Source: Macrostomum hystrix
Taxonomy: Eukaryota; Animalia; Platyhelminthes
Direction: 5' to 3'
Length of the DNA stretch: 64,000 nt
NCBI GenBank assembly: GCA_950097015.1
Contig: CATNEN010000003.1
Coordinates: 7,936,001-8,000,000 of the forward strand
Shown here: positions 49,501 to 55,500 of the stretch, piece by piece
Layout of the letters: each line of letters begins with the position of its first letter
Position numbering within the stretch: the first letter of the stretch is position 1
Notes under the pieces: model-generated
Databases searched by the model: none
What the model saw: the letters and a program-made list of their open reading frames with translations, nothing else
Told to the model about the DNA's origin: nothing
Made by a program: the position numbers and the translations under genes

Positions 49501-52500
49501 GACCGAGCTTTAGTATTGTAAATACACATCCTAGTTGCCGTAGCAACAACATGCCTTACAAAATGACAAAGCCTGGGTCGCGAACAAACGCATTTTAATA
49601 TTGTCCCCGTACGAAACACTGAGCAATACTAAATAATAACCATATCATTACGCACAGTGTCAGATCAAGGACATAATTTTTTAAAGTACACTTTTCACAA
49701 TATTGGAAGAATTATAGTCTCATGATTTAAATGGTCGAACAGACTGTCATCAATAAAAATGTCACAGTAATCCATGAGAAACAGACAGAAATCCATGAGA
49801 AACTGACAGTAATCCACAAGAAACAGACAAAAATCCATGAGAAACTGACAGAAATCCATGAGAAACTGACAGAAATCCACAAGAAACAGACAAAAATCCA
49901 TGAGAAACAGACAGAAATCCATAAGAAACTGACAGAAATCTATGAGAAACAGACAGAAATCCATGAGAAAAAGCCAGAAATCCATAAGAAACAGACAATA
50001 TTCATGAGGAACCTGGAGAGTCAAAAGAGACTAGGCTCACCTTGATACGAGCTCCGGCATAGATCTTGTGCACCACATCACCAGGTGGTCGGCCAGCCTC
50101 CCTATCTAGATAGATGGACTCCATAAAGACCGGATGAGTAGATTGGCACTCTAGCCAGACGTGGCCGGGTTCCCGCATGCTCAAATTGACGCCGCGGCCA
50201 ATGTGCAATCTGGCGCGCTCGGAGACATCTGTGCGACGCACGTTGCTTAATTGGCCGAGACAGAATCGATGCGGCGATGAAGGGTCGGTGTAGCCGTCTA
50301 TCGTAACAGAGGACTGACGGTAGGGCACCTGGAGATGCGAAATATTTACCAGTACATCGCAAATCATTTGGTGACACTAGACCCACAGTTATAGAACAGG
50401 CTATTACGCCTGTTTCGCTTATTCCTGAGCACACGCAGACTGGTATACTAGTCCATGTTAGTCTATATACCATAATATAGAACTTTTTAATTTGTTAAAT
50501 AAATGTTTTTTGCTCTTTAAGCTAGTTACCAAAATTGTCTATATATATTGTATATATATATATATATATATATATATATATATAGGTTGTCTTTTCTATT
50601 ATAATCTTCTGGTTTCTTTATATTTCAAGTATAATTTAGTAGAAGCCCTATGACATTTAATTTTTTAAATTTTACATTTTTAAATTGATTGTATTAAAAA
50701 TGTTTATCTATAGGGCCTTCCATAACTTAAAAAAATCTTCCCTATTAAAATTAATTGAGCATTAGAGCATGTGCAGTTGAATTATTGTAACTTGTTTTTG
50801 GGTCTACAAAATTGTTGTTCTCTCTTGAATAAGTCTACAAAAATAATATTTGCTTGTAATTTTGCAAATAATATTTGCCTGGCTGTCGTACTCCGGTTTT
50901 CATCCGGCCTAGTCCGGTTTAACCCATTTTGGGGGTGTTTTCGGATCAAAAAGATTTCGATCTGGTTTTTGTTTCGAAATCTATCTTCTGGAGATGCTGT
51001 GTGCTGTGCCGAAGGAGTCTGCTCACCGCGGTTGCCGATTCGCACATATCACGAGGCCCCCCATCTTATGAGTCGCGCCGCCGAGACGAAAGAAGACGCC
51101 TAACTGCCCAGTGCTGTCCAGACTGTGCGGATTGGTATGGGGCTCTGCCTCCCAGAAGAACGGGACAGGCGGTTGCAGAGTCATTGTCATCACCGGCATG
51201 GTACAATCCTGCAGGCCCCGAACTTCTTTGCCAACGAAATGCCACAAAGCCCGCCGCCTGCTCCCTTGGAGCACATGAAGGTCGGCAAGCGTCGACAGCG
51301 CCCTCTACGCGACATATCCGTCGTACCGAAAGAGGCCCCCTAGAAGAAGCCGTGAAATCTGTAGTTACAATGGACTGCTAAGCGGGGACAGGCTTTTCTA
51401 TTTTAAAACTAAAGAAGTAAGTTTTGTGAAGTTATGAAGTAACTCGTTTTTAACAATGCGGCTGAATAAGTTTTTACGTTTCTCCGTTAACACAATTGTC
51501 CCTTTCAGAAAGACGAAGTGCGCGTGTGGTGAATTGTGTCTGTGTGTTCGTTTCATATTTCCCCTGGAAACTGCAAAGAAACTGCAACTGCAACTTACTG
51601 CCCACTGTCCGACAAGCTACGGTATCTAAAATTTTAGACGGTTAACCGTCGGTGCGAAATACATTAGAGGTTGGCCCTCTGTGCATGTGCAATGCAATGT
51701 GTCAATTTTGTTCTCTGAGATGTTTCCAGTCATTAGTTTAATTACTTTCTTTCATAACATTGCGTCCTATGATCTTTAACGCTTGTGATCCATGGGGTTG
51801 TAGTACAAAACGTTTTCAATCTTAAGAATGCTGTAAACTCCTATCTCGTCTGTGTAAAAAGTTCAGTACACTAACTAAACGTCACCATATTTCTGCTGCT
51901 GTTCTGCCCCAAAGCAGCTCTGGTTATCTAAACGTCTTTCCAGAGCGCCTATGCATGAAGCCACCGCACCTAAACGCACCGCAGCAAAACAGAAAGCCGA
52001 CATGCCGGTCAAACGACACCGCCCAAGTGTAGAAACGGTGCCGGCCAAGGTCTCTTTGGTGGCTTGCAAGAAAGGGACGGCTGCAAGGGAGACCCAACCG
52101 CCAGTTTCTGCGGCTACTGTTCTGCAGGCTGGCTTGACGGCTACAGGTGACACCCAACCGCCAGATGCTACAGCTACTGCATTGCAGGCTGACGTGACGA
52201 CTGCAGGTGACACCCAAACGCCAGATGCTGCGACTACTGCTCTGCAGGCTGGCGCAACAGCTGCAGGTTGCAATCCGTCGCCTGACATGGTGCCGTACAA
52301 AGTAGAGAGGACGCAGCCGTACTTCCTTTTTCAATATGACGCTAATCTTGACAAGACCCAAGTTGTCGGCACTGATGGATCCACGGCAGCACCGCTTATT
52401 GTTGTCGTTGCGCGGGAATCGGCTATTCCCGTACAAGTAGGCTGTCGCGTCTGCATTGTCACGGCGAAGACCAACCGAACGACAGCAAAGCGATACCCAG

Positions 52501-55500
52501 GGAGGCTAGTACGGGGACCATTTTCTAATAAAGCCGAAGCCTCTGGAGCCGCAAGCCTGACTAAGGTCCACGCACAGCCGACGGAGCTGCCCCGAGCTTG
52601 CGTGTCCTACAAAGGACTCCTTCTCGAGTTGCAAAGGGCCAAGACACTGACTGGCTCACAAGGTGAGTATACTGAGGTTCTGCCGTACTGCATGTGTACA
52701 TGTTGGCATACATACATATATATGTTTTTTTGTATACATATACATACATCCGGACATTGGTAGTCCAGGGTATCTAATGAAACAATATTTCAGGTTCCGA
52801 GGTTTGGGCAGCCCGCGTCATTGAAGCCCGATTGCGAGAAGAGATAAAAGTTCTGCAGCAGAAGGCAGTCGTGGCACAGAAGATGGAAGCAAAGCTCATG
52901 CGACAATTAGATCGGGAACATTCGAAGTTCACCAACCTGGAACGGAATGTAAAGGCTGCTAACGCGCTAATCGTTCGGGCCTCACAGTGCATGGTGCCAC
53001 ACTCTTCAGACACAGCAGCGATTACAGTTTTTTGTAATACTCGTAGATTCAGACAGTCAAAATCCTAATCATTTCAGATAGGACGGAAAAAAGCAAAGCA
53101 AAGCCTCAGTTTTGTGGCAATGAAGATCTTTTCACAGATTCTCCTATTTCCATGCAATACTTAAATTATTTGTTAGCTGATTGTGATCAAGTAATTCAAC
53201 CTGCGCCTTCGTCGGTTCCGGCCTCATCCGTGCAAGCGCTAAAGGCCGCCTCTGGCCAGCTTGCGGATGATTCTTTGACGTTTGATTGACGTGTATGATC
53301 ATAAAACTGCTTCGAAAGGAGTTATCCACGTGTCTGTCACGACGATAAAGGCAAGCTTGCTTGCTTACGGCACGTTTCGATAGAAATCTAGTGCGGTCCT
53401 AACTGACTATCTATTCGACTACAGTCGGGTAGAAAAGGATAATTCTTTTTTAACTTTCTTGCATATGAATAGGAAGGAATTTCCCATTCTTAACGTGTAG
53501 ATGTGCGAACTTACAGGCACTTTTTTACAACAAAAAGTCGGGAGATGTGCGGAGAGGAAGAACAGTGTTTAGTAGACACGAGGATGCCGCACACTCAAAC
53601 CGTTGCGAAGCAGAGCTACCTTGCCACGACGATCTCACGCGCCGAAAAAAGCAGAGACTGCAAAAAGACTGTACGAGATGGCATTATCCGAGGAAGCGGA
53701 GACAACTGAGATTTTCTCTCCTGTCAATTCAGCTGACGTCGTCGACAAGCCTGAACCGCCAAAGAGAAGTCGAAGGCTAGTGCAGAAGCTAGCGGCGACA
53801 AGCATAGCAGCAGCAGCTTTCGAGATGGAGAAATCGTGCTTGCGAAGTTTAAGAACTTTCCATGCTGGCCAGCTCTTATTCGCTGTAAAGCTTTAACACG
53901 CTGGTTCCATTTTAATATAATTCTGCATAATTAGTATTTTGTAGTTTTGATATAAATTACATTTTGCACCTACTTAATTTCACTCTATCACTTTCCGATT
54001 GCATGCGGTAACAAAAATAATGCGGGACCTATCGCCTAGCTTTTTTAGCTAGGCGATTCTCTAGACTAGTCTGTGCCAACAGGCATTTGTGTACTTCCTT
54101 TATTAGCTACCTGAGAAGGCTAATGAATGCTGGTAATTTAAAGCAGTGCGTTGCGCATGCAAATAACTTCTATGATAACTTGATAGATTGCATGCTTAGC
54201 AGCTAGCAATCGGGATGTATGTAACAACAAGAGCGATTTCAGAAATTTGAAAGTGCAACAGTCATTTTTTGTGTCAATCGTTGATTTTCTTTTAATCTCA
54301 TTGAAATGTATATGCGTCACATTTTCGTAAATGCGCAATATAATTTTTCTCATATCCGTCATAAAAATACCCCATGTGGTAGTGGCGCTCCTATGTGGTA
54401 GTATCGCTCCTATGTGGTAGTATCGCTCCTATGTGGTAGTGGGTAGTGGCGCTCCTATGTGGTAGTGACGCTCCTATGTGGTAGTGGGTAGTGGCGCTCC
54501 TATGTGGTAGTGACGCTCCTATGTGGTAGTGGCGCCCCCATGTGGTAGTGGCGCCCCCATGTGGTAGTGGCGCACCCATGTGGTAGTGGCGCTCGCATGT
54601 GGCAGTGGCGCTCCCATGTGGTAGTGGCGCCACCAAAAAGCGCAATCCCACCCAACGCGCCTGGACCTTGGTCCGGTTCTTTCGTCCGCACGCTTACCCG
54701 ATTATTCGTCCAGTTGATAATGTATTTTTTCCATCAGAAAAAATTCGGACGAAGCGGAAACGACAAGTTACAAAAACCGGGTGAATTTTGTCCGGTCTTG
54801 AATTTCGTACGGAAATCGGTCAAAAATCTGATGGAAGTCGGACAAGCAACCAGAACCAAAGTCCAGGCAGGAAAAATCCCCGCCACGCTTACTGTTGCCA
54901 CTCACCCCACTAATTTTAGTTAGAAACTCATTATTTCGCGAAAGTCGACCCGCAGACACACCTGACACACGCCGTGTGTACATCTGCCCTGACTTTCTAC
55001 GAATTCTACCAACCTTGAACGTTTCTCCAATCTGTTCGTCCTGCTCGTAATAGGAAATTGAGCACCAATAATCTGGATTATTTGTCGAACTGGGCGCCGA
55101 GCCGGTCGTAGCTGAGGCTGCAGCGGCGGCAGCGGCGGCAACAGCAGAGTTTGAAACAACGCCAGGCCGAGAGAAGGAGCCGCTAACAGCAGTATTGCCA
55201 GTCCAAGTCACAGTCGGCTGAATCTGGCTATAGCCGTGATGCTGCGGCTGGTGTATAGCGGAATCTAGCCAGGCCGATGAATTTGAAGATGGGGCGACAG
55301 GATTGTGAAAATTCTGCTGCGGATGATGGTGCTGCTGCTGCTGTTGCTGGGTTAATTGTTGATGCCTTTGGGGCTGCGTCAGCGGCAGCGGCGAATGCAT
55401 CGCGGAGACTGGACTATACGACAATAAAGGATTCTGATTGGTTAAGCTCAACGGCATTGGGGCTAGAGCGGGCGTGACGGCCGAGCTAGACGGAGGCGAG

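Follow-up and report, generated by a model that had tools for sequence, protein, structure and literature searches.

An apparent recombinase element in a SMAD4-like intron of Macrostomum hystrix is probably a mosaic of dead fragments, including parts of two unusual transposon families

DNA transposons that keep an accessory gene of host DNA metabolism beside their transposase are known from fungi, in which TET/JBP genes are carried by CMC-type and other DDE (Asp-Asp-Glu) elements, and CMC transposases share catalytic insertion motifs with Transib/RAG1 (PMC12730594). Excision of hAT elements leaves hairpins on the flanking DNA, and Ac/Ds excision in yeast yielded no revertants in the absence of Mre11 or Sae2 (PMC3299998). 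Cryptons, by definition, have no terminal inverted repeats (TIRs) (PMC3212892). Here, we analysed a 64,000-nucleotide stretch of the flatworm Macrostomum hystrix (the window; assembly GCA_950097015.1, contig CATNEN010000003.1, positions 7,936,001 to 8,000,000 of the forward strand), in which a preliminary description had taken the 4.5 kb between positions 50453 and 54950 for one inserted mobile element that combined tyrosine recombinase (YR) motifs with a module resembling the C-terminal end of the DNA-end-resection factor CtIP/Sae2. We conclude, at a probability of roughly 0.85, that this interval is a mosaic of dead transposon fragments within an intron of a SMAD4-like gene and not one recombinase element, the CtIP-like and recombinase fragments having become adjacent through chance or nesting. 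The locus itself amounts to ordinary transposon debris; what is unusual is the pair of parent families.

In a search of the whole 220 Mb assembly, in which the window is C3:7936001-8000000, the 4.5 kb was not found repeated as a unit and only its separate pieces recurred elsewhere, which counts against a single inserted element. The first of these pieces, 50875-53022, is what remains of a tnp2/CACTA-like (CMC-type) DDE transposon; this copy is 3'-truncated, has an internal deletion and lacks a transposase, and it retains the following parts:

50875-50953, + strand: 5' TIR of a CMC-type DDE transposon (first 3 nt mutated), with TCCGG repeats in the subterminal region
50991-51047, + strand: C-terminal remnant of the transposase, 57 nt, motif ..RGCRFAH.., the remaining transposase deleted
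51067-51343, + strand: remnant of an open reading frame (ORF) resembling the C-terminal end of CtIP/Sae2, in two frames, the N-terminal half missing
51951-53022, + strand: gene X, with exon 1 at 51951-52661, a GT-AG intron at 52662-52793 and exon 2 at 52794-53022, cut off at 53022

The 5' end of this copy (50877-50953) was 82% identical to the 5' end of an element at C7:637917 (L068 361-438), and its TIR aligned with the terminus CCCGCCTGGC... of an intact family that we call B. For the transposase remnant, the identity was 88% with L038 8094-8150, which encodes the C-terminal end of the transposase in a further family, D, and tblastn placed it at residues 712-734 of the family B transposase. 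The CtIP-like remnant is split between frame A (51067-51156) and frame B (51149-51343; ..RRLQ..HHRH..FF..MP..PP..KRRQRPL) by a 1-nt frameshift near 51149-51156; it keeps the CxxC motif (CPDC), carries HHRH in place of the GRHR of the family, and at the DNA level was 72% identical to the copies at C1:16085642 and C7:639049. A genome search for CtIP-like loci recovered it at C3:7987067-7987319. This ORF is evidently a pseudogene. Gene X, the exons of which were searched singly and not as a joined, spliced protein model, was 93% identical to C7:728179-729300 and showed 59% amino-acid identity to X1 of family B. The C7 copy, the closest one, shares the intron at 52662-52793 with the window copy and carries another internal deletion. 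The window is collinear with family D over the 5' TIR (50877-50953), the transposase (50991-51047), the CtIP-like ORF (51053-51346) and X (52396-52980), and therefore 50875-53022 has lost its transposase by internal deletion and is cut off inside X at 53022. The preliminary description had placed the recombinase motifs in a spliced gene; the intron at 52662-52793 belongs to X, which contains no YR motifs, and the YR pieces change frame by frameshifts rather than by splicing. Its remark that the insertion has no obvious TIRs stands for the outer ends of the interval and fails for the inside, in which TIR-bounded pieces are present.

The second piece, 53023-54376, is the 5'-truncated, decayed 3' part of a separate element with a YR-like and a PWWP domain, which abuts the broken DDE transposon:

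53023-54376, + strand: relic of the YR-like/PWWP element
53196-53679, + strand: YR-like coding remnants, in three frames
53815-53931, + strand: start of a PWWP domain (Pfam E 0.023)
54248-54376, + strand: native 3' terminal region of the YR element

The YR-type motifs reported earlier on the strand opposite SMAD4 were located on the + strand, comprising FNLR (53196-53207), V.DHKT..KG (53291-53320), RTYRHFFTT (53506-53532) and MPH...Y (53584-53619), and tblastn tied them to a family of long ORFs elsewhere in the genome. The relic (53282-53880, three frames) matched residues ~759-1043 of 1124-aa ORFs at E 6e-26, with FNLR lying further upstream, and window positions 53503-53706 matched ~50% identical stretches inside ORFs of 1124-1163 aa at E 1e-11 to 2e-10. 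In addition, the 3' terminal 128 bp of the relic (54248-54373) were 69% identical to the terminus of an intact copy on C10 (E 3e-9).

The intact YR element is ~8 kb long, contains a single ORF of 1124 aa together with tandem repeats, and occurs at unrelated loci in five copies that are 95-100% identical and have common ends, plus one older copy. The five copies are:

C39:281391-289240 (L035:4392-10000 with L027)
C10:2396258-2404392
C39:4728020-4736443
C33:2660626-2668796
C25:8108531-8117045

Its 5' end lies at L035:~4392 and its 3' end 2085 nt past the stop codon; the ends, GGTACGTTTCTGACGA... and ...TCGTCATAAACGAACC, form imperfect inverted repeats (17/22 positions) with GTCAT/ATGAC subterminal repeats. 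No CtIP-like match was found within or adjoining these five near-identical copies, and the CtIP-like ORF resides in DDE transposon families. The YR and CtIP-like parts thus do not make up one element, as had been proposed; they belong to separate insertions and never co-occur in intact copies, an outcome that the preliminary description had itself named as contrary to its proposal. Since the two parts belong to separate elements, the suggestion that a YR element uses its own CtIP module to process covalent recombinase-DNA adducts has no basis here.

To the CtIP-like gene belongs a set of better preserved transposons. A search of the genome with the SAE2 profile (PF08573) matched eight loci, each an ORF of 270-395 aa, and at all eight an ORF homologous to window 51951-52660 comes next on the same strand. 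Family B comprises three copies of ~8.3-8.5 kb each, 95-100% identical and with sharp common ends:

C24:5003850-5012344
C31:3393236-3401632
C7:13226957-13235217

These ends consist of the inverted repeats CCCGCCTGGCYTTTTWGTCCGGA, after which come many TCCGG repeats; TTA was seen beside the 5' end in the C24 copy and beside the 3' end in the C31 copy, ends taken from different copies. Along the element come an acidic-repeat ORF, a 778-aa ORF, a 284-aa CtIP-like ORF and lastly gene X, which has several exons. At least four divergent families have the CtIP-like ORF flanked by a tnp2/CACTA-like DDE transposase on one side and X on the other, a transposase preceding the CtIP-like ORF in four families with transposases 33-67% identical, and most of the 30 CtIP-like loci have a transposase remnant upstream, X downstream, or both, within 1.5 kb. 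A single database relative was found for the 778-aa ORF, the Lytechinus protein P0001, which has a Transposase_21/tnp2 annotation (database E 7.6e-24; pairwise E 4e-32). In the alignment of the two, the first D, the second D, the C(2)C, the H(4)H and the E of the CMC-type catalytic core, as delimited in PMC12730594, all line up (DGFP/DGLP, FDAPARA/ADAPARA, GCDKCY/GCGLCY, HQVCCH/HSLTH and FES/FEA). An AlphaFold model of the transposase reached a predicted local distance difference test score (pLDDT) of 35, too low for use. Gene X encodes a coiled-coil protein that may bind DNA; a BEN domain, for which the only lead came from a language model (score 0.85), was not seen in X by Pfam at E<=10. As a side observation, 18-36% of the sampled words of L041:1-3285 (C24:5007192-5010476) recur at 90-100% identity in contigs from three or four metatranscriptome runs of a single wastewater study; such a habitat may harbour the flatworm or a close relative, and these contigs are no proof of transcription.

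The CtIP/Sae2 C-terminal-like module noticed in the preliminary description was confirmed, as a peptide at 51067-51343 that is the cargo of a mobile element, and from comparisons of the intact copies we regard it as solid that this tail is a true homologue of the CtIP/Sae2 C-terminal domain. The element protein is 280-400 aa long, and its last ~90 residues constitute the domain. Intact ORFs pass the gathering cut-off of PF08573 (19.8 bits), with 20.4 bits for L032 9129-9980 and 23.3 bits for L014 514-1698. Twelve domains from different families, 43-76% identical, have 15 invariant residues in common, including CxxC, RL, G-RHR, F..I-MP and RR.RPL; neither C21 nor C24 varies, and G-R-H-R varies little or not at all. 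A profile built from these 12 domains and searched against 1.8 billion representative proteins matched 233 proteins at E<=1e-3, always at the C terminus, and retrieved canonical CtIP proteins at E ~1e-12. When ten of the matches were sampled with Pfam, six (561-912 aa) contained CtIP_N and SAE2 and three SAE2 alone, and the remaining one, the top match (P0003), had no Pfam family at E<=0.001. Searched against the genome, a canonical CtIP (P0007) matched element copies through its residues 535-608, with E values from 4.6e-10 to 1e-5. Its N-terminal part gave no credible match there (best E 0.6), CtIP_N (PF10482) was found neither in the element ORFs nor elsewhere in the genome, and a profile search of the PDB with the CtIP tail returned no solved relative. 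Separately, the genome's best match to canonical CtIP (41% identity, E 4.6e-10) is L055 (C39:3400481-3400738, minus strand), a CtIP-like domain without a transposase or X within 1.5 kb and a candidate for the final exon of the host CtIP gene.

The ORFs of the YR element, 1124-1163 aa long, consist of N-terminal repeats, two or three C..H..H zinc-finger-like motifs, a helical domain, a YR-like domain with the motifs ..NFHR.., ..HKT..QG.., ..(K/R)xFRHFF.. and ..H.....QSY.., and a PWWP domain, which Pfam recognised in the intact ORF at E 9.5e-15. The profile check that had been proposed for the encoded proteins thus gave a divided answer: SAE2 was recovered in the intact family ORFs, Pfam found neither Phage_integrase nor DUF3504 in the YR-like ORF even at E<=10, and the window peptides gave only the weak PWWP match. 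Within the YR family, the R of NFHR/FNLR, the second R and the Y are kept, together with the hairpin K and the H at the H/W position. In all members and in the window, K or R replaces the histidine of the tetrad (KFFRH, RTFRH, RTYRH), leaving the R-H-R-Y tetrad incomplete; type IB topoisomerases are known to have this substitution too. In a structure model of the middle 330 residues of the ORF (pLDDT 65), the second domain aligned with topoisomerase IB at Z 9.0 and 8.4 over 130-160 residues, and the model aligned with XerH, XerA, XerD, IntI, Cre and Tn1549 Int at Z 7-8.2 over the same range of lengths; the top Foldseek ranks were nearly all tyrosine recombinases, at E values of 0.08 or more. 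From this model, a YR/topoisomerase-IB catalytic fold can be predicted with moderate confidence. A search of the PDB with a profile of the YR alignment yielded phage gp5 repeats alone, a meaningless result due to the low-complexity N-terminus of P0002. Outside this genome, a word-indexed database search found a Macrostomum lignano hypothetical protein alone, at 55% identity.

Beside one of the five YR copies lies a Gypsy-like long terminal repeat retrotransposon, L035:1-4397 (C39:277000-281396, minus strand), with a gag-pol ORF open over more than 1481 aa; because at least 10 of its copies are 99% identical, it was recently active. We considered whether the YR ORF might be part of this retrotransposon and rejected it, as at least 10 retroelement copies end 5 nt from the start of the YR element and contain no YR ORF. 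On C10, an intact 816-aa ORF (L036:114-2561; C10:2389113-2391560) has the look of a hAT-type transposase, judged by eye from a BED-like zinc finger and a C-terminal dimerisation-like region.

Compared with the described systems, the flatworm CMC-type element resembles CMC transposons (Transposase_21/tnp2) in its TIRs, its short subterminal repeats and its several genes, and the TTA seen at its two ends in different copies would match the TWA duplication of Chapaev3 (PMC4079192). It differs from them in its CCC..GGG termini, in the absence of a direct Pfam match and in its CtIP/Sae2-tail gene. The product of this gene is similar to CtIP/Sae2/Ctp1/COM1 in its last ~90 residues, with CxxC, RLQ, RHR, FW/FF..MP.TP and basic C-terminal motifs and with profiles that connect both ways, whereas it is a 280-400-aa protein without CtIP_N that is transposon-encoded and present at ~30 loci. 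The fungal TET/JBP-carrying transposons provide a precedent for CMC-type and other DDE elements with such an accessory gene (PMC12730594), although their cargo is a base-modifying enzyme and the flatworm cargo the tail of a break-processing cofactor, and the host kingdoms differ. The YR element, in turn, is reminiscent of Crypton/DUF3504 elements (PMC3212892) in its single ORF, its YR-type domain, the lack of a reverse transcriptase and the Crypton-like R, beta-hairpin K, xxR, H and Y positions. It is set apart from them by K or R in the tetrad, subterminal repeats, the C-terminal PWWP and the N-terminal zinc fingers, and it misfits the Crypton definition because its ends are imperfect inverted repeats. 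A limited literature search turned up no report of a CtIP/Sae2 domain as transposon cargo, nor one of a Crypton that has a PWWP domain; the YR/PWWP family may be an undescribed kind of recombinase element.

Within the window, the transposon pieces lie in a single host intron, which was delimited from the sequence and its ORFs and contains, besides the two pieces above, the following features:

50329-55013, - strand: single intron of a SMAD4/Medea-like host gene
50359-50452, unstranded: left part of a repeat resembling a short interspersed nuclear element (SINE), 76-79% identical to other copies
50453-50874, unstranded: AT-rich spacer with (TA)n at 50551-50584, without a match in the genome search or the examined loci
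54359-54654, unstranded: 19-bp minisatellite (GGTAGTGGCGCTCCCATGT)n in 12 registers, with more than 50 similar arrays in the genome
54655-54872, + strand: ~216-bp miniature inverted-repeat transposable element (MITE) with TIRs of the CMC type (inverted copies of GCCTGGACYTTGGTYCKGG at the two ends)
54951-54998, unstranded: right part of the SINE-like repeat, contiguous with the left part in other copies

The SMAD4-like exon ending in ...GETFK stops at 55014 and the next exon (50002-50328) begins at 50328 on the minus strand, with the splice sites AAG|GTTGGT (donor) and CTCCAG|GTG (acceptor), and the 4.5 kb interval takes up nearly the whole intron. A 21-bp tandem repeat, (AAACTGACAGAAATCCATGAG)n, of ~10 units at 49800-50024 adjoins the latter exon. 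The 5' 120 bp of the MITE were 88% identical to C1:4983851 and C30:3176836, and its TIRs are of the same type as those of the CtIP-carrying transposons. The start of the minisatellite coincides with the 3' end of the YR-element relic. The spacers 50453-50874, 53880-54247 and 54873-54950 had no match among the genome loci compared.

The starting point of the preliminary description, that two parts of one SINE lie 4.5 kb apart, was upheld. When the two parts (50359-50452 and 54951-54998) were joined by script, solely as a test of continuity, they aligned unbroken with other copies of the ~180-nt repeat (window 13630-13769, L037 3666-3793, L040 3642-3776 and L033 5994-6130), and the consensus of these copies runs through the junction, ...GATACTGT|ACGCAGGC..., as had been written. 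The right junction is ambiguous by ~25 nt, as 54929-54956 is likewise similar to the 5' region of the SINE and CGCAG is common to both candidate junctions. This similarity takes in the last 22 nt of the supposed insertion together with the CCGCAG at the junction. The right piece may accordingly represent a second, internally deleted SINE copy or a junction at microhomology (CGCAG).

Several points weigh against the mosaic and the origin that we assign to its CtIP-like part. The position of the mosaic between two parts of one SINE is left unexplained by it. Pfam gave no match for ten window peptides except the weak PWWP, with no SAE2 match at E<=1; the copies are too decayed to be recognised alone. 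The termini of family B, CCCGCCTGGC...GCCAGGCGGG, read CCC..GGG and not CAC..GTG (or CA..TG), the flatworm transposase has no direct Pfam match, Transposase_21 (PF02992) included, and P0001 itself scores 26.3 bits (E 5e-6) with Transposase_21, below the cut-off of 28.6. The dN/dS values between families, 0.1-0.33, are rough figures, as dS is saturated. Metatranscriptome contigs from one wastewater study match parts of the element; splice joints are absent from them, and the CtIP domain is left uncovered. Finally, as regards function, both the making of hairpins by CMC transposases and the binding of the CtIP tail to the host MRE11-RAD50-NBS1 (MRN) complex are suppositions. Nothing in this mosaic is predicted to be functional, and because the copy is frameshifted, has lost the RHR motif and lacks a transposase, the CtIP-like gene would be inert here.

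For the intact elements, we speculate that the CtIP-tail protein would engage and activate host MRN at the donor ends left by the DDE transposase. Such ends would be hairpin-capped or gapped, and MRN acting on them would lead to resection, which would favour homology-directed refilling of the gap from a sister copy, so that the donor element would be kept while a copy moves. That the tail brings MRN to donor-site ends or activates it there is a tentative proposal, held at somewhat less than even odds, and its basis is indirect: the catalytic motifs common to CMC and Transib/RAG1 transposases, the flank hairpins of related hAT elements and the need for Mre11 and Sae2 after Ac/Ds excision in yeast. 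The more specific combination, in which a macrostomid CACTA-like lineage kept a mini-CtIP that opens hairpins and resects the transposon's own breaks, and in which the window relic derives from a TIR-bearing KxxR/PWWP recombinase element, we consider doubtful.

A role opposite in sign might also be envisaged, with the CtIP tail as real cargo that acts as a decoy: without CtIP_N, it would block resection by host CtIP-MRN and thereby steer breaks to end joining or protect transposition intermediates. The lack of CtIP_N in every element ORF, compared with its presence beside SAE2 in six of the ten sampled profile matches, agrees with such a role, as does the restriction of conservation to the tail. 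However, the CxxC, the RHR, the T-P site and the basic C-terminal end, features linked to MRN stimulation, are conserved, and a simple blocker would need none of them; a short coiled coil is moreover kept upstream in some copies. A decoy is in our view unlikely.

For the second piece, it would be conceivable that the YR-like/PWWP ORF belongs to a host gene family and that the window fragment is a pseudogene copy of it, given the missing Pfam integrase or DUF3504 match, the K or R in place of the tetrad histidine and the PWWP, a chromatin-reader domain typical of host proteins. This is improbable in view of the five copies at unrelated loci, which are 95-100% identical over ~8 kb and have common ends, imperfect TIRs and GTCAT repeats, and of the element 3' terminus that the window relic retains.

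Passive capture of a host fragment, as in the transduplication by Pack-MULEs, would leave the CtIP-like ORF without a role for the element. Many copies, that of the window included, are broken, and with the CtIP domain left uncovered by contigs from RNA libraries its expression is only putative, which agrees with such capture; yet the ORF occupies the same position and orientation in at least four families with transposases 33-67% identical, is intact in most families, and retains 15 invariant residues across domains 43-76% identical at dN/dS values below 0.35, which makes passive capture quite improbable.

A single TIR-less, Crypton-type YR element of 4.5 kb carrying a CtIP-like module for its own covalent adducts is hardly credible: the YR-like and CtIP-like relics do lie 2 kb apart on the same strand in one SINE-delimited block, and a distant YR-like ORF (1436 aa open frame, C38:33666701-33666865) is found 5.6 kb from a CtIP-like ORF (C38:33672453-33672728), but the block is not repeated as a unit in the genome, its CtIP-like part, together with the 5' TIR and the transposase remnant, runs collinear with copies of DDE transposons, the five intact YR-PWWP copies lack a CtIP-like ORF, and no YR match lies near the remaining three copies of the family to which the C38 CtIP-like ORF belongs, the adjacency on C38 being probably another case of nesting.

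For the window, the outcome is a correction: what looked like an element with both a recombinase and a CtIP module consists of two dead neighbouring fragments, and better copies of both families exist in the same genome. A conserved CtIP tail in a DDE transposon would represent an accessory gene of a new kind among transposons, offer a natural minimal CtIP domain for studying MRN activation and help to study how transposons steer the repair of their own breaks. If the proposed mechanism is true, resection at excision breaks would turn cut-and-paste transposition into a net gain of copies. The YR/PWWP element, for its part, would be a candidate for chromatin-guided recombinase transposition, in which the PWWP domain may serve the choice of target.

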